Positions 49,298-60,668 of a stretch of 64,000 nt of DNA are shown one piece after another. The translations under genes were made by a program, and so were the position numbers. The stretch is from Lepidodermella squamata. Lineage: Eukaryota; Animalia; Gastrotricha. The notes below the pieces were generated by a model, which saw only the letters and a program-made list of their open reading frames with translations, did no database searches and was not told the DNA's origin. How positions within the stretch are numbered: the first letter of the stretch is position 1; each line of letters begins with the position of its first letter. The stretch covers positions 1,612,001 through 1,676,000 of the forward strand of contig JBLDXI010000017.1 in NCBI GenBank assembly GCA_047495785.1, read 5' to 3'.

Positions 49298-49745
49298 AAA
49301 AACACTCCGGATGCGTTGTGATGACAAGCTCCTAGAAATATATGCAACTTTATTTCGCTATCTTTTTTTTTAGTTTCGAATACTGCTCTGAAAAAAATTG
49401 AAATTGTCATAAAATAAATAGCAATATTAGTCGCTTTTATACTCTAAGCATTTAGCTGATATTTATTATTTGTTTTATATCTCTCTGAAATGCTTTTGAG
49501 AATCCAGACTGAAAAGTAAAAATGAAATTTTGTCAGCTGAAGTTTTACAGACATCATTGTTTGTGTCTGAGATGTGAGATGAAACTGCCAAGAGAAGCGC
49601 CGTGAGACAATGGCGATGAGACAGGTCAAGGTGTTTCATTCAAGGTCACGAGAAATGGACGCGTCAACATTGCATCCAGCGGCGGAAACACTCCGAGTTT
49701 ATTTAAGACATTTTCCAAAATTACTTAAAAATTTTAAGGTTGATA

Positions 49746-50315
49746 ATGATTACGTCCAAGTTCGACCGAAACGCTGATCGCTGTTTACTAGCGATTTCAT
49801 CGACTTTTCAGGCTGTCCTTCTAGGAACAGTGGCTACTCTGGTTTTGTTCGGATACATCGCCAATAGTATTCAAAAAGTTTAATTTCAACAATTCTCAAC
49901 TCATTGATTTATTTTTTTAAGGCAAGGGAGATTTACTTGACGTTGCCATTTGCACGATTTTCGGTGTTGCTTGGGTTACGTTTTCGATCATCCTATTAGC
50001 GAATCTTTGCCGCAAAATTTCCAGCCCGAAATGGTAACTTTTTTGAAACTATTTTTATTCTTGGTTTGAATCTCAATTTACAGTGGAACTGAGCTTTTCG
50101 ACGACAAGCTCGGACTGTTTTTCCCGCATATCACGCTAATGCTAGCGGCTATTTTAGTCTTTGTCAGCCGAGCTGTGATTTGGCTGGGTGGATCTCTCGG
50201 CGGTATCAATTTGGACCTGTTTTCAGTGGGCAGCACAATCGCCTACATCGCGGCGTTTGTCTTCTTTGTTTTCGCCATGCTAACGCGATCGGTCATGAAC
50301 CAAATAAAAATATGA
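49746..50315 (+). CDS. Small 4-TM protein family, member A (154 aa); introns 49867-49921, 50034-50083
   Basis: Spliced ORF MITSKFDRNADRCLL...RSVMNQIKI with four hydrophobic segments; clear paralogy to B-E. Confidence 0.82.
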
Positions 50316-50806
50316 ATAAAGGCCGATTCGCTTGGCTGAACAAAAATCTATCATGTACAAGTACAACCAATCTTGAATTTATAATATTAAATTTGCAAGA
50401 GTAAAAAAATAGATCGATGGAATTCGAGGTATTTGCGCGATTTATTTAAAAGGATAAAATGCGACTAGAATGGCTATTACCTTTCAATGCATGGTCAACT
50501 TGATGGTTAAATGACGATAAAACGCTGCACTCCGGGCAGTCTAATTCCATCCCCTAGGAAGAGAGTATGGGTCTTAGACCTAATCAATAGGAATCGCCCC
50601 AGTGGCAGCCGAAGGTTTTTAGTTTTGTATCCTTATAACGTTTTTTATATGTCGGCCAAAAAAATTACCTGCGGCTTGAAACCTGTCTGGTTTCAGGACA
50701 CGAACTCGTTTGTTTTTTTATGTTTTCGGTAAAAGACAAACAATTGTTTTTTCGGTGTGACTTCCGCGCATTATCATCCAAATTAGTATTCAGGTTTCGA
50801 TTATAG

Positions 50807-50858
50807 CCAATGAGTGAGTTGTCCATTACCGGGTTAGGTTGAAAGCGAGCCTATAAAA
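50807..50858 (+). promoter_or_regulatory. CCAAT box plus TATA box upstream of the secreted protein gene
   Basis: agCCAATga near 50807 and TATAAAA at 50852-50858, about 75 nt before ATG 50930. Confidence 0.55.
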
Positions 50859-50929
50859 TGGGCCGTGCAGAGCGGCATTATTGGTTACCTTAATTCACTT
50901 TCAATTTACTGATTATTTTTCACTTTAGA

Positions 50930-51754
50930 ATGGCGCTTAGCAAAGCTATTCTAATCACGTTGGTCGTCCTCACCGTCGCTTGCTACTTCACGTACGCTTG
51001 CAGCTGGGGTTCATCTGGTAGCTCGACTGGTCGGCATGGCTCCAAATCCGAAGATGACAACGGTAACAGCGGAGAGGATCGCAACAAGTCTGGCGAGAGA
51101 AAGAGCAAGAAGCACGGTGGCGATCACGAGCGAAAGGGGAAGGATCACGACAAGAACAAAGGCAAGGATCACGATTCCAACAAGGGCAAAGATCACGAAG
51201 GTAAAATAACCAAAAATTTTGCATAGCCGTTACATTACCGTTCTGATTTCAGGCAAGAATAAGAAGCATGGCGAAGGTGTGTCCCTTTAAAACAGAATTA
51301 ATAACATATTTTATTATTATTTCATTCTCTCAGGTCGTAAAAACAAGCACGGCAACGCCAATGCTACTGCTTTGGTGAGTTTTAAATTTGAATATTATAA
51401 AATCGCAATTAAAATTAATTTTTTTCAGAGCTGTAACGATCCCGAAGATAACTATTGCTCGTGCATGCCGTTGTCGGAAGACAGCAAGAAGTGTAGCTTC
51501 AAGCTGTCGTCGAAGAAGCACGACATGGAGACGTGCAATGCGTTTTGTGGCGACAAGACCCAACAATGCTACGTGCCGAATACACCCGGTGCCTGTCAGT
51601 GTATCGACGCCAGCGAAAGCTGTTCGATGACGGTATATTCTTACGATTTTTTTGAATTCCCTTTCTTTTATATAATCCATTTTATATTCACGCACAGAGT
51701 GCTTCACATTCAACTTCAGCCCAATGCGCTGATGCGTGTCGCCAGGTCCAGTAG
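50930..51754 (+). CDS. Secreted protein: K/D/H/G-rich repeats plus two 6-Cys modules; exons 50930-51200, 51253-51276, 51334-51374, 51429-51632, 51698-51754
   Basis: Signal peptide, KGKDHD repeats, four GT-AG introns including a 24-nt microexon, open frame to TAG 51754. Confidence 0.78.
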
Positions 51755-51899
51755 AAACGTCACCCGCCGAAAGATAGACAATATGATCACCTGTTAAAAT
51801 TTTTGCAGATTCTCTTGATTATTATTTTTTTTTAATAAAACGTGGATTTCTGGTAATTATGAAAAATTACAACGATATTTTTAGTATTTCGATTGAAGC

Positions 51900-52310
51900 A
51901 GAAATGCCTTCTGCCACCGCAAATTTGGACTTTCTGCCTTTAATTTTGGGTTTTCTGTAACCAAATATGATGCCTAGTTCAAAAATTGCCATTAAAATGA
52001 GGTTTCTTGGAACCAATCGATGGTCAGGGCGATCTTACTTGAGGGGCAAATGCTAATTTACCTTTTTTATTATATCGAAAAATCTTTGAAATAAAAAATT
52101 TCTTATACTTTCGTTCCACCATGGAAACCCCAAATTGGTGGAAAAAATCTCAACCTGTTGGCAAGAAATGCCATTCCAATCTTGATTTGGGGGAAGAAAC
52201 CTCAATTTGATGGTAAGCCTTGTTTTGGTGGCAAGAAACCTTAATTTGATAATTTTTTGATGTTCATATTTGCTGACAGAAAATCCTAATCTGCTGGCAA
52301 GGCACTCCCA
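51900..52310. repeat. Degenerate foldback-like element built from short subrepeats in opposite orientations
   Basis: 'caagaaacctcaatttgatgg'-like units repeat at about 52110-52310, with reverse-complement copies at about 51900-52020. Confidence 0.5.
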
Positions 52311-52340
52311 AAAATACTTCATGGATCGCTAACATCTGAC

Positions 52341-52690
52341 CTGTGATGTTTCTGGATGGATCTCTCGGCGGTATCGATCTGGACCTGTTTTCAGTCGGCA
52401 TCAGCGCAATCAGCGCCTTTGTTTTCGCCGTGCTAAAACGCGATCGGTCATTAAACAAAATATAAACAAAGGCACAATCGCTCGGCTGAACAAACCTCTC
52501 GAGTACATGAAGACTCAATCTTGATTTTATTGACTATAAATTAATGAGTAAAAACAAGCGATCGCCGTACGCTACAAATTTCAGGTATTGGCGTTATTTT
52601 TGTCAAGATGAGTGACCAGAATGGCTATTACCTCTCAACACACGTGTCACCATGATGGCCAAATGGCGACACCGCTGTCTACGCTGCATT
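52341..52690 (+). pseudogene. Truncated duplicate of 4-TM gene A last exon and 3' flank (copy of about 50173-50530)
   Basis: Shared blocks ggatctctcggcggtatc, ggacctgttttcagt, cgcgatcggtcat, gaatggctattacct; has a deletion and a frameshift and no upstream exons. Confidence 0.82.
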
Positions 52691-52729
52691 TCAGAAATTG
52701 AAAAATAAACATTTTTCTAAAAGCTGAAA

Positions 52730-53206
52730 ATGAGAGGAATTTTACACCCAATTTTAGCTGCAATACTAGTTAACAGTTTCTTCTCGGAATGTGGCGCGTT
52801 TTTCGCCAGTCACCCGTCGTTCATGCCGAACATGCCCCATACGTACTCGCGGTGTAATTTTCCGAGCGACTGCCTCCACGGCGACATTTGCACCGGAAAT
52901 CGCTGCCACAGCCGCTTTCCTGTTTCAAAGTACGGCCGCTGCACGTTCAACTCGGACTGCTTCCTGGGCGATAAATGCATTCATCGAACGTGTTACAGCC
53001 AACAGTTTGTTCGGCCTTACGCTAGCTGTACGTTCTTGTCCGACTGTTTCTCCGGCGATAAGTGCATCGATCGCGAGTGTTATAGCAAAAACAGCCACAG
53101 ACAGCCGCAGCAGGCGACAAACTGGATGCGATGCAGCTTCGCGACTCAATGCCCGACTGGCCAACGTTGTAATAGCGATGGATATTGTACCTCGAATTTT
53201 TTCTAA
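52730..53206 (+). CDS. Intronless secreted protein with four C-x5-C-x5-C-x4/5-C repeats
   Basis: Signal peptide; repeats such as RCTFNSDCFLGDKCIHRTC. Confidence 0.85.
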   Translation: MRGILHPILAAILVNSFFSECGAFFASHPSFMPNMPHTYSRCNFPSDCLHGDICTGNRCHSRFPVSKYGRCTFNSDCFLGDKCIHRTCYSQQFVRPYASCTFLSDCFSGDKCIDRECYSKNSHRQPQQATNWMRCSFATQCPTGQRCNSDGYCTSNFF

Positions 53207-53537
53207 AAAAATTGATGATTTATGACCTGATAAAAGTCGATGTCGAGATAGCATCTTTATTGCATTTTTGTTTACGAGCGAATAAATAACATTAAAACAT
53301 GTTCGTTAATAATATCATGATTATAATTTCTTAATATCAGGTGTGCGATATGATTTATTATACACCCTCGAAGCAGTAGTGACGCGGTGATATCTGATAA
53401 CCCGAAAAGCATATCTGATTCTCACAGAAACACAACAACAACAACAACAAACATGCCTCCGGTTTTGTGCGGTAAAATAAAAGCATTTCAACACCTGCGA
53501 AGAAGTTGAATTTTTCCGCCTTAATAATAACAAGACC

Positions 53538-54140
53538 ATGATAACTTGCGTAATTGGAAGAGAAGCCGATCGCTGTCTTTTGGCAATCAATTCAGCTGCA
53601 CAGGTATAAAATATTTTCACTCAATAAAAAGCTCTGTTCATATAGCTTTGCACAGGCTGTGATCTGGGTTTTAGTCGGTGGACTTGTCGGTTTTCGTTAT
53701 TTTAATGACAGTAAGTAGTCCATATTACAGCGCTGAATGAAAATTACCGATTTATTTTTTTAAGATGTTGGGAATTTTCTGGACGTCTGGATTTGCGTTA
53801 TTTTCGGAATTTTCTGGCTGATTTTCGGAATAATCGCTTTTGTTGGGCTTTGCTGCAGAAATCACAATCCGAGATGGTAAGAAAAATTGCTCTCGAATTA
53901 TCAATTTTTTTAAATATTTCAAATAGTGGAACCGATCTGTTTAGAGACGTCACATCATTCCTGTGCCACATTGTCCTCCTTGGCGCTGGAATTCTCGTTT
54001 TTATCAGCCGATTTTGGCACTGGCAGGTCGGTTCGGCGTTTGGCGTCAATTCTGGCCGTTTCATCGAAGGCAGCCTCATCGCTTACCTGGGCGTTGGCGT
54101 CTCTTTCATATTTTTTATGCTGGCCAGAGCCGTTCTCTGA
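53538..54140 (+). CDS. 4-TM family member B; introns 53604-53655, 53711-53764, 53877-53926
   Basis: MITCVIGREADRCLL...LDVWIC..FG..W...C|GTDLF; spliced frame intact (148 aa). Confidence 0.82.
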
Positions 54141-54673
54141 ATATTAATTTGCAACAATTATTCGTTTCGCTTTTTCTTTTTATGCGCCACATTATTTGAA
54201 CAAATAAAACAGCAAAAAATAATTATTTCCTATAAATGCCTGGTATAAATTTGCACCGTTTGGTCAATAAAAACGTGATAAAATATATTACGGAAAATTG
54301 TTTAAACGAACTGAAATTAGGTTCAATTCATTTTTTTCTGTAAAAAGTTAAATTTTCCCCTAATTTTTTGAGATTTCAGCAAACTGCGCGATGAGTCGTC
54401 CACAGTCTGAAGAATATTCTTCGGGCACGCGATCGCCTGTTTTGCGGTCAAAAAAACACGCCGCGAGCCGTGTAAAAAGGCATGTGATTCTTCAAATCGC
54501 CTCGTAGTGTATCGTAAAAATCACAAAGAAAAGCACATCATCATTATCATCATCTATCTATATAGCGATCGACTGCTCTGTTGTAAAATATTATTGCAGT
54601 TGCCAGTGGGTAAATCATTGCTAATTGATTTTTGTTTATTCAACGAGAATCGGTGGAGCAGAGACTTGATATC

Positions 54674-55466
54674 ATGATCGTTCTTCGACTTGACCACGCT
54701 AGTGATTTGTTTTTACTAGCTATCAGCTCTTTTTTCCAGGTAAACAACTACTTACCTACTCAATTTTTGCTGTGTTTACCGGTCAGTAAAAAAAATTCCA
54801 GTCCGTTCTATGGAGCTTCACTGCTGCCAACTATTGGCTGAGAAGGGTCAGTTCAGGCCGCCTTAAAGAAGTTACCGGTATAAGATCATTCAATATAGCA
54901 ATCGGCCTGAACTACTTGATAACTGAATTATACAGATGCGCTTGACCTATGGATTTGTACGTTTTTGGCTATATCGTGGACAGTTGGATTTTGTGTCCTA
55001 TTAATCATAATTATGAGGCACGGGTTTACAGGATGGTAAAATTTAACTCAAAATTTGTAAAATTATTAAAAAATTCCGAAATTCCAGCAAAAGAATGCTC
55101 GATAACTGCAGTATGGTGTTGACTTGCTTGCTAATTTTTGTAAGCACCCTGGTCGCTACCGGCAGCCGTATAGTCCTTCTGCTTAGCGACGCGTCAAACG
55201 TAGCCGATTTAGTACCGATCTACGTCTTCTGCATTGGCTCGATGCTATTCTATTTCACCTTGATGGCGACCAGCTTCTGGATGAGCCTCGCCAAAGCTAT
55301 AACTTCAGATCACGGACAAGTAAGACTGGACGAAACTAACGACTTTACGGCTTCATCAATCGAAGAGCAGCCTTCGACTTCAAAACTCGTCGATCCTTAC
55401 GACCTGAGCCACATTACGCCAAACAGCAAATCGCGTCGATTTTTGAAAGCAAAAAATTTCTCCTAA
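54674..55466 (+). CDS. 4-TM family member C (4 exons)
   Basis: MIVLRLDHASDLFLL..FQ|..LDLWICT..W..C|..FCIGSMLFY; same intron positions and phases as B and E. Confidence 0.78.
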
Positions 55467-55517
55467 ATTCCAGTTAAAACGTTTCGTTATTTTTTTTAGG
55501 TTTTTTCGTATTGAAAA

Positions 55518-56376
55518 ATGAAAAAACCTGCAGATGTCTTGTTGATGTTGGGCACATCGCTCATACAAGCCTTTTGTTGGGTCAGTGTCGCTTTCATTTA
55601 CTGGAAAGATCTCATCTTCTATCAATATTGGCTTGATCACATCAGTAACAATTTTTTCTCATTTCGATTTTCTCCATTTTTATTGCAATTTTTTTAGTAA
55701 ACTATGATCTGCTGCTTTGCACAATGCTGGCCGTTGCCTGGTTAACGTTTTATCTCGTGACTTTGATGGTGCTAATTACGAATACCCAATGCTTCTCGGA
55801 GCCTTACGAAAATGGGCCTAGGTAATTCATATTTTTTGAGCCATGGCAAGCGATTTCACACTTTTTTTATGAAAAATAATGGGTGTTGCGCAACAATGCG
55901 TGTGCATCATCTGGAGAAATGACACAGAAAGGATCCAAATCGCTCGTCACGTCTCATTTTTCTCAATTTTTGATATATTAATATGAAAATATATTTATTT
56001 TAGCCAATGTGATTGCCGTGGTTTGCCGTTATTATTCACGACATCGCTGACTTCAAACGTTACCGCAATTATAGCCGCGTCGATACGACTCGTCAAAGTT
56101 TCATTGATGTACCAAAGAACGGATCATGTGGATTTGCGACCGAAGCAAAATGTGCCAATATTTATCACAACCGACAAGCCAATTGTTGTAGAACTTCTCA
56201 GCGAAGCTAGCACAGACCCGTTTTGCGTCGGTTCTATGCTCGTGTATTTGACCATGTTTATTGCCACCTGTTTTACCTACATAGCCGTTGCACAGCGAAA
56301 TCGCACCAATTTTAACGAATCGATCAATGCCCAACAGCAGAACGAAAGTGCCGATGAGAGCTCTGTACTGGCGTGA
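55518..56376 (+). CDS. 4-TM family member D (3 exons, expanded TM3-TM4 loop)
   Basis: MKKPADVLLM..Q..W..|YDLLLCT..AW..|..IRL..FCVGSMLVY; splices at positions homologous to the other members. Confidence 0.72.
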
Positions 56377-56970
56377 ATTTGAAACCTCCCATACTAGTTG
56401 ACCAAATCTTGTTGTTTGAGGTTCATTGTTATTTTTTTCAAGAATAAATTCCTAGCTATGACTATGTCTATTTTTCAAGAAAACCGTTCGGAGTGGACCA
56501 TCGTAAGAGATTAATGGGTACCATGTGTAAAACAAATAAACCGGGCTTTACGCGTTAGCGGCAACGATACTAATGTTTTATGCGCGCGCGAGTGTGCGCG
56601 AGCTGTTGGCAGCGCATGAGCGTATTCGCACAGGCTGGGATCTATCCATATCTTTCAGCGAGACAACGATAAACAAAGCAATATCTGATGCTGTATGAAA
56701 CGGACTTTCCCATGAAAAGGCTAGCCATCGGCGTCAATTGGCTTGACTGCTGTAGTAGCATGCTGTTAGGTCAGGAAATGTCTGGGCGCCGGGCAATTAC
56801 TATGGTTTTTATTACAAAGCTCGTAGCCAAATCGCGAGCAGAAATATTTTTTGCTTTTCCTTATAAGAGCTCGATTATTTATTGATTTGTGGCGCCTTGT
56901 TATCTATTTGCCTAGTGTTTCAAACAAATTATATCAATAAACACTTTCCTCGCTTCAATCGATAACTAAT

Positions 56971-57621
56971 ATGATTAGCGCTAAAGTCAAGCATCCCAGC
57001 GATCGGTGCCTCTTGAGTGTAACTTGCATTTTACAGGTAAATATCCTAATCTTTAACTATTCAAACAATAAATTTAATTTTATCAGGTTTTGTTTTGGAT
57101 TCTTGCTGCAGTTGCTGTTTTTCTGCAGTTTGCCAATTCCTCAACTCCAGGTCAGAAATAAATTAGAAATAGAAAATGACTATATAATTATTCTATTTTA
57201 GGTGCGAGTAAAAATTTGCTCGAAGTTGGCGTTTGTATCAGTTTCGCCATAGCTTGGCTCGGCTTTTCGATCGTCGTCATTATCAGCCTGTTCAAGGCCG
57301 GTGGCCCGAAATGGTAACCTTAATCCACCTTAACAAAAATATATTAAAAGAATCTCTTCTCATTTCAGCGGCAAAGTCTTCTGCGTCATGTTTTTCGCCT
57401 CCAACTTGAAGGCCGCAATTCCGATGCTTCTGTTGATCCTAGCCGGAGGTTTTGTAGCTGTCGCACAGGTGCTACGCTGGCAGAAGGCTGCTAGCCCCGG
57501 CGGCTTTGACCTTGACAATCTCTGCGCTGGCGCTATTATCGGCTATATCGTGGTTTTCCAGCTTTTCGTCTTCGCTCTGTTGGGACGCGCTACTCTGAAA
57601 CACACCAAAACGCCTGTTTGA
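56971..57621 (+). CDS. 4-TM family member E (4 exons)
   Basis: MISAKVKHPSDRCLL..LQ|..LLEVGVC..AW..PKC|..GGFDLD.LCAG.IIGY. Confidence 0.82.
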
Positions 57622-58409
57622 AACGTTCATTAAGGCGGACTGAATGAAATTTGTTGCTCAATATATCTGCTGTGAGGAATTAATAAAAAGAACTGCAGTG
57701 AATATTTCCGTTTTTTATTTTCTTCGTCATTTCACTCGACCGATTCATGACAACGTTACTATTAAGGCGTATAGAATTATAATAATAGAAAGCTATTACA
57801 CTTTTGCATATCCTTCATCTCACGAATTTTTTCATTGCTAAATAATTTTTTTACACAGCAGTATGCCACCGTTGCGACTAAATAATAGTTTGGAAGCGCG
57901 CTTCTCGAAGAATTTTTCGATCGACGAAAACGAAAGCAAAAAATATGAATGACGGTTACTTGTGACAAATAATAGTAAATGCGAAGAAACACGAGTGTAA
58001 TTATAATCATGTAGCAACTTCATTAGGCGGCGATACAAAAATCAATCACTGGCTTGTTTCATTTGTACAAAGTTTTAATTACAATAATAGTAGGAATTTC
58101 ATGCGCGTTTTTATCAAGGCAGCAGTGCTTCATGAAGTGTTTCATTTATAGCTGAAAGCTGCAGGTGTATTGCCACTTTGTAGTTTTATTCAATTAAATT
58201 CAAGCCATGGAGGAGTAATCAACGGTGGTTGGAAATAGCAAAAGCAACGACTACATTTATTTATACGGAGACTTTTTCGCTTAACAAGCGCAACTAAAAG
58301 ACGAAAAATCAACACAGTTTTTTTTACGAATAATTCGTTATTAATAATATAATAATTATAATAATTTCGATGATAAAAATTTATTAATTTTTTCTGTCGG
58401 CGTCCGGAC

Positions 58410-60668
58410 TCATTGTGCACCCTGGGCGAAAAAACTCGCGCCCGACGGCTTTTTCGGGATCGTCGGCTTCGGGCCGATGGTAGGCGGTCCTCCGGCCGTG
58501 CTCTGCCCACCGGTTGACGAGAAGTAGCGACCGCTGATCGTTTTCCGCTCGCGATTTTTCGGCTCTGGCCTCGCGCGGTTGAGGATTTTCAAGAAGTCAT
58601 TGGTCTTTGTTCGCATTCGTTGATGAATGTAAGCCTGAAATAGGAAAAAATTACATTAAAAATGAGCAATAAATTCAATCTAAGCACATTATTAATCAAT
58701 TAAACATTAGTTCTCGTCTTCCCAGAACCAAATTTTGGAATTTTTAATGGAACTTTCAATGGTGGTATGGTCGACCAACATAATTTTAAATAAGTAGTCA
58801 TTAAATTTAGCGTAAAATTCTGCGTAAGACGCAGTGTTCACTTCCGAATTAATGCTTAGGCTGAAATTCCTAAAATTATTCGAAAAGTGACTCTATGCAT
58901 ATTTCGTGTTTGGTTCCGCTCACCTTACATTTGGTTCCGATAAAGGATATTTTGATTAAAAAATTATACAATTTCGAATGACAATTCGATCGATCTCTTT
59001 TTGAGCTATCGTATTTACAGGGGATCCAATATTTTTCATTTCAATTCAATAAAAAATTATTAGGTAAATATCTTTTATCGGAACCAAATTTACGGTGAGC
59101 GGAACCTAACTTGCATTTTGCGGAACCAAAACCAAAGTCGAAATATGCCAAGAGTCATTTTTTTGAATAATTCTACGAATTTTAGGCAAAGCATCAGTTC
59201 TGAATTGAACACTCTGTGTTATAGAGAATGTTACGCTGAATTTACTTGTGATTTCTTTAGAATTATTGTGGTCAATCTTGATACCCAAGAAATCTTCGAA
59301 AAGTGACTTTAGGCCTCTACAAAATTCAAAAATTTGGGTCCGGTATATTTCCGGTTATTCAGTTAATCTTCCTCTGAATTTTCCGATTTTTTTACCAACT
59401 GAAGTAAAATTGATAAAAAAAGAGGAAGTTTCCTATCAGTTGAATGCGCCAATTTCCACAAATTATGTTAGCTGTAAACGGTTTTCGATGTTTCCTACTG
59501 TTTTGTAAGTGCCCGATGCAATTGCTCATTTTAGGGCCGAGGCGAGCCACGTGGAAATGATAAACAAATCCCGGTTAAATCAAATCGCTACCGTGTAAAA
59601 GTCATTATCCCCATTCATTAGTTGCACATTTGTTTACATGCGAGATTCAACTAGCCACTCGACTATACGGTACTATAACAACACTACGCTATTATGCATC
59701 CAGACCAGCTATTTGCAACATGGTACTGCAGCTTAGCTTTTACAAATTACCATGGCAGAAATGCGAAAAAAATGACGAACCTTGGAACATTTGATGTGGT
59801 AATGAATGTAGTTTCGTAGTGTTAGCACCAAATTGGCTGAATTTTCCGCCGCCGGGCCGGCCTTGATGTGATGAGGGAATAGAATGAAGGTGATGTATGA
59901 CAACTCGTTGCCCTCCGCCGTCGTCACCCGCAGCCCGGGCACGTTCGCCAGCTCGGCCGGCGGTTCGCGCGAGCTGTAGAGCACCTGCGGCGCCTGGGCC
60001 AGTTTACGCTTCGCCTCCTTAAATTCCTGCAGAAACACCTTACTGATGACGATATCATCCGCATCGGAGAAAACAGTGCCGAAAACAACGGTAACTCGGT
60101 CGTACTGGGCTGATACGAAGAGCACCTCATCAGACCGGTAGTGGATAACAGCCGGGGCGGGCGGCTGCGATAGCGGCGCTGTTGATTTGTTAGCTTTTTG
60201 CGCGGCAACTTCCGCCGCTAGAGCGTAATGCGCCTTAAAATATTTCTCCATAACGGCGGCGAAGCACTTCGCGCGTAAAAACGACGCCTTTTTAGCTAGA
60301 GCAGCATGATCGGCGGGCAGACTTGCCAGATCGAAAAGTAACGAAACATTGAATCCAGGCTCGGCAGGTTCGACGTAATACGACCCGTAATGCGCTTTTA
60401 GCACGTCTAAAATGCCGTGCGGTTCTAGTTCGGCGAAACATTTAATAGAAACACTGACGACGACTTTCGATTTGTCGACACTTGCCGATTCAGTGCCGTC
60501 TTCATTCGTCACAGCGGCTTGAGGGTTCGAAATGTGGAAGACAACGCCGTCGAAATCGCAGAAGCGAACGTCGATTTTTTCGAGTTTTTTCTCCTTACTA
60601 ACAGCGGTCGCAAACAGCTGAGTCAACAGCTCTTCCACACATCGATTGTGAATATCGATGAGAATCAT
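58410..60668 (-). CDS. ARPC2: Arp2/3 complex subunit 2 (p34); exons 60668-59781 and 58634-58410
   Basis: DFDGVVFHISN, DRVTVVF, KVFLQEF, APQVL, RNYIHYHIKCSK|AYIHQRMR..FLKILNRARPE. Confidence 0.96.
58721..59344. mobile_element. Long-arm inverted-repeat (foldback/MITE) element in the ARPC2 intron
   Basis: Left arm about 58721-58952 is reverse-complementary to right arm about 59066-59344 (e.g. ggttccgctcacc / ggtgagcggaacc; tttggttccgataaa / tttatcggaaccaaa). Confidence 0.8.

Follow-up and report, generated by a model that had tools for sequence, protein, structure and literature searches.

A cluster of split genes for a putative family of small four-transmembrane proteins in the gastrotrich Lepidodermella squamata

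Gene models and the decayed copy

The DNA considered here, which we call the window, is a stretch of 64,000 nucleotides (nt) from the gastrotrich Lepidodermella squamata (assembly GCA_047495785.1, contig JBLDXI010000017.1, positions 1,612,001 to 1,676,000, forward strand), with a G+C content of about 42%. Between positions 49746 and 57621 of the window lie five related genes, designated A to E, each predicted to encode a small protein with four transmembrane (TM) segments, together with a fragment of a further copy; a sixth gene, F, lies on another contig. The models for A to E were rebuilt from the sequence by translating the region 49600-57700 in its reading frames and setting exon borders at GT-AG sites. 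Lengths below are in amino acids (aa) and refer to the coding sequence (CDS).

Gene A, 49746..50315, + strand: 154 aa, three exons (49746-49866, 49922-50033, 50084-50315), introns of 55 and 50 nt in phases 1 and 2, CDS of 465 nt
Dead copy of the 3' end of A, 52338..52669, + strand: aligned with A 50170-50517 in 317 columns, at 83% identity
Gene B, 53538..54140, + strand: 148 aa, four exons (53538-53603, 53656-53710, 53765-53876, 53927-54140), introns of 52, 54 and 50 nt in phases 0/1/2
Gene C, 54674..55466, + strand: 206 aa, four exons (54674-54739, 54802-54877, 54936-55035, 55088-55466), introns of 62, 58 and 52 nt in phases 0/1/2
Gene D, 55518..56376, + strand: 207 aa, three exons (55518-55644, 55698-55821, 56004-56376), introns of 53 and 182 nt in phases 1 and 2
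Gene E, 56971..57621, + strand: 164 aa, four exons (56971-57036, 57087-57150, 57202-57313, 57369-57621), introns of 50, 51 and 55 nt in phases 0/1/2

A preliminary description of this DNA had proposed five genes of about 150-210 aa, and the rebuilt models, at 148-207 aa, agree with it. The CDS is a multiple of three in all five, and each of the 13 introns has GT-AG borders; twelve measure 50-62 nt, and the remaining one is the 182-nt intron of D. The non-terminal exons are 55-127 nt long, within the 55-130 nt proposed. Intron phases 0, 1 and 2 occur in the same order and at homologous positions across the five genes, and A and D, as had been noticed, lack intron 1, their first two exons being fused, so that exon 1 of A (121 nt) equals the 66 and 55 nt of the first two exons of B. 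The cysteine reported at the last junction in four genes is likewise there: the last intron interrupts a codon for Cys in A, B, C and E, whereas in D that codon is Ser.

The cluster had also been called invisible to open reading frame (ORF) calling, which turns out to be only partly right. The window's ORF list has no long ORFs of the prokaryotic kind in the cluster region and misses the short upstream exons, but it does include the last exons, as ORFs of 58-123 aa. Since the first two or three exons measure just 55-127 nt and easily escape notice, the family, if validated, would be a useful test case for annotation.

An AATAAA signal overlaps the stop codon in A and lies about 64 nt past the stop in B, about 68 nt in D and about 62 nt in E. 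No poly(A) signal is found in the 51 nt (55467-55517) between the stop codon of C and the ATG of D. A strong T-rich acceptor (a run of T, then AG) lies 18 nt upstream of the D ATG, and an AG is found 3-12 nt ahead of the ATG in A, B and C as well. We considered whether A to E could be modules of one long gene and rejected this, as each begins at a conserved methionine of its own and ends at a separate stop, and a poly(A) signal belongs to each of four. Gene C carries a hydrophilic tail of about 60 aa. By inspection, there is a donor-like CAA/GTAAGA within its last exon, at about 55321 and directly 3' of TM4; a splice from there to an acceptor at about 55499 could remove most of the tail, 49 hydrophilic residues, the frame then reaching a stop after four more codons.

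The fragment at 52338-52669, also foreseen in the preliminary description, covers just the last 146 nt or so of the A coding sequence and about 200 nt of its 3' flank, with no upstream exons. It contains many insertions and deletions, some of them frame-breaking, among which are a loss of 15 nt and a gain of 2 nt in its coding part; it is a dead partial duplicate of A. Directly 5' of it is an imperfect tandem repeat (52181-52248; unit of about 18-21 nt, 3.4 copies), which may mark the duplication breakpoint.

Family size, age and coding status

The whole genome assembly (121.2 Mb in 151 contigs) was searched in six frames with two profiles, one for the last exon and one for the exon encoding TM2. 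These searches returned the five genes of the window and one further locus, and exon profiles yielded no additional loci at E<=10 in the 121-Mb genome beyond these six.

Gene F (locus L006), contig C3, about 3992600-3993100, - strand: four exons, introns of 55, 56 and 62 nt in phases 0/1/2, all motifs of the family present

The N-terminus of F reads ML-x8-D-x2-LL-x6-Q. When two exons were compared separately by phmmer, every pair among the paralogs was linked, A and B for instance at 2.9e-15 and 2.2e-11; the matches come from two independent exons, and chance similarity is thereby excluded. The proteins are paralogous throughout their exons. A is nearest to B and E, and D is the most divergent member, a pattern that points to three subgroups, with A, B and E in one, C and F in another and D by itself.

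Differences between paralogs amount to 0.24-0.60 at codon positions 1 and 2 and to 0.61-0.75 at position 3, in the order 3 > 1 >= 2. The proportion of silent differences (pS) is 0.72-0.85, which is saturated, and that of replacement differences (pN) is 0.33-0.48. Saturated pS with pN at about half that level indicates old duplicates and constraint at the level of the protein, and the comparison fits duplicates kept under purifying selection. The preliminary description had spoken of a rapidly diversifying family, and this part of it is not supported: the genome holds just six genes and one fragment, and with pS saturated and pN at about half of it, fast or adaptive divergence is not demonstrable.

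The same data bear on the possibility that the models are not functional at all, being either pseudogenes in decay or open frames that arose by chance within duplicated DNA. One copy in the cluster is plainly dead, no poly(A) signal is found for gene C, part of whose long tail may be intronic, and no family member appeared among the protein collections searched. Against this, open frames, GT-AG sites and intron phases are kept in all six full copies despite the saturation of silent sites, replacement changes occur at about half the frequency of silent ones, the bias among codon positions is that of coding DNA, and each of the four helices retains invariant residues. The true fragment, moreover, shows what decay looks like at this locus, with frame-breaking indels at 83% identity, that is, at a divergence of 17%. 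We consider a nonfunctional origin of A to F very improbable, and on the comparison of the paralogs we are highly confident that they would constitute a real coding family.

Conserved motifs and predicted topology

The sequence motifs that had been proposed for the family, MI-x8-D-x2-LL-x6-Q, L-D/E-x3-C-x6-W and G-S/A-x3-Y, are found in the rebuilt models, with the MI start itself confined to A, B, C and E. In the first exon M1, D11, L14 and Q22 are invariant. The exon encoding TM2 has an invariant Cys and Trp, separated by six residues and following the L-D/E pair, and in TM4 the Gly and Tyr of G-S/A-x3-Y are invariant; Ser-Arg is frequent late in TM3.

Hydropathy identifies four hydrophobic segments in each gene, which upholds the earlier description of the products as four-TM proteins. 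When the last exon was folded with its alignment of six sequences, the model showed a pair of long helices connected by a loop of 8 residues, at a mean predicted local distance difference test score (pLDDT) of 71. The loop between TM1 and TM2 has 8-17 residues; the one between TM3 and TM4 reaches about 45 aa in D, compared with about 8-12 aa in A, B, E and F. Nearly all of the invariant residues lie inside helices or at helix ends, the Asp standing before TM1 and the Gln in the middle of it, and the conserved positions of TM1 (11, 14/15, 18/19 and 22) share one face of the helix. Lysine and arginine, like the juxtamembrane cysteines, are found mostly at the two termini and in the loop between TM2 and TM3. 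This charge distribution favours a cytosolic location for both termini and the TM2-TM3 loop, and the juxtamembrane cysteines are candidates for palmitoylation. An acidic dileucine sorting signal at the N-terminus was considered and discarded: relative to the LL the Asp stands at -3 instead of -4, and these two leucines already form the beginning of TM1.

Search for relatives

Homology searches were run exon by exon, with queries of 36-125 hydrophobic residues. Pfam hmmscan on each exon of the six genes at E<=10 showed no recurrent family; the sub-threshold matches were scattered, with one member each for DUF4389, DUF7027, 7tm_3, DUF4064 and others. DUF7027 was followed up with a genome-wide search, which misses all of the family loci, and was dropped.

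A HMMER search of 1.84 billion representative proteins with the last-exon profile found no relative; its sole match (P0001) is a 640-aa translation of a tandem repeat, which we regard as an artefact. Word-indexed protein searches with the last exon of D and with the six-sequence alignment (E<=10) returned nothing, and neither did a search of the PDB sequences with the last-exon profile at E<=10, CD20 included. In the ESM Atlas, the last exon of A gave no usable match; the matches to that of C were limited to unnamed clusters of unrelated protists, and the recognition score fell short of the useful range. JGI metagenome DNA was scanned twice, and none of the pattern matches obtained was confirmed by tblastn. 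With Foldseek, the model of the last-exon hairpin matched only unspecific helical hairpins among the PDB structures, at E>=0.9.

Taken together, these comparisons of predicted exons suggest that A to F probably have no close known family. The proposal that the family is lineage-specific is thus upheld as far as exon-wise searches reach, there being no relative outside this genome.

Comparison with the known tetraspan families

Several established families of small four-TM proteins resemble A to F in general design, and the preliminary description had called their size and topology MARVEL-like. The MARVEL proteins (MAL, plasmolipin, CMTM and the physins; PF01284) have about 150-200 aa, four helices, short loops and both termini on the same, cytosolic, side, an orientation that in A to F is predicted from the distribution of charge and is ambiguous in C and F. 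MARVEL proteins act by lateral association in the membrane, as we propose below for A to F. They differ in that no exon of A to F matches the MARVEL model (hmmscan, E<=10), and to our knowledge the motifs D-x2-LL-x6-Q, D/E-x3-C-x6-W and G-S/A-x3-Y are not MARVEL signatures. A six-frame search of the genome with the MARVEL model gave 13 matches, five of them over the cut-off and none at the cluster (C17:1661746-1669621) or at gene F (C3:3992600-3993100). Alignment of the last-exon profile by hhalign with a single-exon MARVEL gene of the same genome was null, with a probability of 0.2%. The MARVEL likeness therefore stands as an analogy of size and topology, but not as kinship that the MARVEL model or hhalign can see.

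Three of the MARVEL-profile matches fall within 5 kb of one another on contig C13 (about 2732158-2737054; L011, L012 and L014). They are unrelated to the A-F family.

The MS4A/CD20/TMEM176 proteins (PF04103) share with A to F the four helices, ends that in A to F too are probably cytosolic, a short first outer loop and a frequent arrangement in tandem arrays. In the MS4A family a Gln in TM1 is conserved and the second outer loop varies; in the present family it is D in which that loop is longer. The CD20 model, however, matches no exon of A to F, and a genome search with it gave six weak sub-threshold matches elsewhere and none at the family loci. The spacing in TM2 of CD20 is unlike the C-x6-W of A to F.

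The claudin/PMP22/LHFPL proteins (PF00822, PF13903) are also small four-TM proteins, with juxtamembrane cysteines that are sometimes palmitoylated. Their first outer loop is about 50 aa long, compared with 8-17 residues in A to F, which have neither the W-GLW-C-C motif nor an ectodomain large enough for a beta-sheet. With Claudin_2 the genome search found 13 places, of which six exceed the cut-off; none coincides with the family loci. The tetraspanins (PF00335) differ by their CCG motif and large second loop, neither of which A to F possess (the loop of about 45 aa in D has no CCG), and there is no Pfam match. The earlier observation that the tetraspanin CCG and the claudin GLW are missing holds on inspection, and the exon-wise hidden Markov model (HMM) check extends it, with no match to the MARVEL, MS4A/CD20, claudin or tetraspanin models. 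The MARVEL and Claudin_2 genome runs serve as a positive control for the exon-wise mode; PF00822 was covered by the exon-wise hmmscan only.

It is with these comparisons in hand that one may ask whether A to F belong, as a branch that has diverged very far, to a tetraspan superfamily already described, be it MARVEL/MAL/physin, MS4A/CD20/TMEM176 or claudin/PMP22/LHFPL, which has drifted past detection at the level of single exons. The size of 148-207 aa, the four helices, the short loops, the probable cytosolic termini and the juxtamembrane cysteines are all held in common, hydrophobic queries of 36-125 residues have low power, and the taxon to which L. squamata belongs is called long-branched in its published genome paper (PMC11660948). 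Yet not one exon of the six genes matches these Pfam models, even weakly, at E<=10. The MARVEL and Claudin_2 models do detect true members exon by exon in this very genome and miss A to F, the hhalign comparison with the genome's own MARVEL gene reached 0.2%, and on inspection A to F show neither the tetraspanin CCG nor the claudin W-GLW-C-C, nor is their first loop long. We regard a common origin of this kind as rather unlikely.

A possible mode of action

We interpret A to F, with a probability of about 0.5, as a lineage-restricted orphan family of small four-TM integral membrane proteins that would act within the bilayer as scaffolds or partners. The placement of the invariant residues, in helices or at their ends, and the shortness of the outer loops both speak for a mode of action inside the membrane. 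A ligand-binding ectodomain is unlikely, as outer loops of about 8-17 residues (about 45 in D) are too short for one, and we think that A to F would be neither enzymes nor receptors. The proteins might fold as compact four-helix bundles held together by a network of polar residues between the helices, and might act by lateral contacts, either associating with themselves or partnering, trafficking or organising other membrane proteins. This mode of action would be like that of the MARVEL/MAL and MS4A-type tetraspans. We put forward such a scaffold-type mechanism tentatively, and hold it to be possible rather than probable.

Several points weigh against this interpretation. Exon-sized hydrophobic queries have low power against a database of 10^9 proteins. 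In C and F a basic first loop makes the orientation under the positive-inside rule ambiguous, and the mechanism is inferred from topology and the placement of residues alone. No proteins of the family were found in protein collections, including those from assemblies of public sequencing runs, a blank that could reflect low expression or could mean that the proteins of this organism are not included there; it says little on expression, since the Arp2/3 subunit encoded in the same window is likewise not returned.

The principal functional rival is that A to F are subunits that conduct or sense ions or small molecules, with the conserved Gln, Asp/Glu, Arg, Ser, Tyr and Trp lining a pore or pocket in an oligomer. 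Some MS4A proteins are chemoreceptors, and Orai-type four-TM proteins form channels. The conserved polar and aromatic residues do lie inside the helices, on one face in the case of TM1, as such a function would have it. They number just one or two polar residues per helix, however, which is also what plain helix packing needs, and neither an acidic ring nor any other selectivity motif can be recognised; nor is there homology to any channel family in Pfam, in the HMMER profile search or among the PDB sequences. On balance a pore or sensor seems improbable to us.

A bolder version would have the six genes be an undescribed tetraspan family confined to gastrotrichs, possibly a new class at the level of the fold, in which the polar cluster (Gln in TM1, Asp/Glu-Cys-Trp in TM2, Arg in TM3, Ser-Tyr in TM4) would form a binding pocket or conduction path and the proteins would be a lineage-specific component of sensing or transport. 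We mention this as a long shot.

To return to the reading of A to F as an orphan scaffold-type family, gastrotrichs are a barely sampled, long-branched phylum, and a validated orphan family would extend the catalogue of taxon-restricted genes. Orphan families of small membrane proteins are common, and indeed expected, in poorly sampled and long-branched animals, and the practical value of this one is for now modest.

Neighbouring genes

The window has short GT-AG introns, and the cluster is flanked by ordinary animal genes: an RCC1-repeat gene, an RMD1-3 gene and the gene for the p34 subunit of the Arp2/3 complex.

Arp2/3 complex p34 subunit gene, 59733-60668, - strand: nearest database relative 73% identical

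The nearest relative of the Arp2/3 p34 gene product (P0002, 73% identical) comes from another organism and is in ENA on a 24-kb contig. By the level of this match, a related but different animal is evidently represented in public assemblies.

Two further genes are interspersed with the family. Between A and the fragment, at 50930-51760, is a multi-exon gene with a signal peptide, a stretch rich in His, Lys and Asp, and a Cys-rich C-terminal exon. Its 24-nt repeat, detected by Tandem Repeats Finder (TRF) at 51140-51198, encodes KGKDHD-like units, and this gene has no Pfam match. The second, at 52730-53206, is a single-exon ORF of 158 aa with a hydrophobic N-terminus resembling a signal peptide, followed by four repeats of a Cys-rich module of about 30 residues (C-x-F-x-SDC-x2-GD-x-C...). 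It scores 24.3 bits against DUF7107, just below the Pfam cut-off of 24.6 bits.

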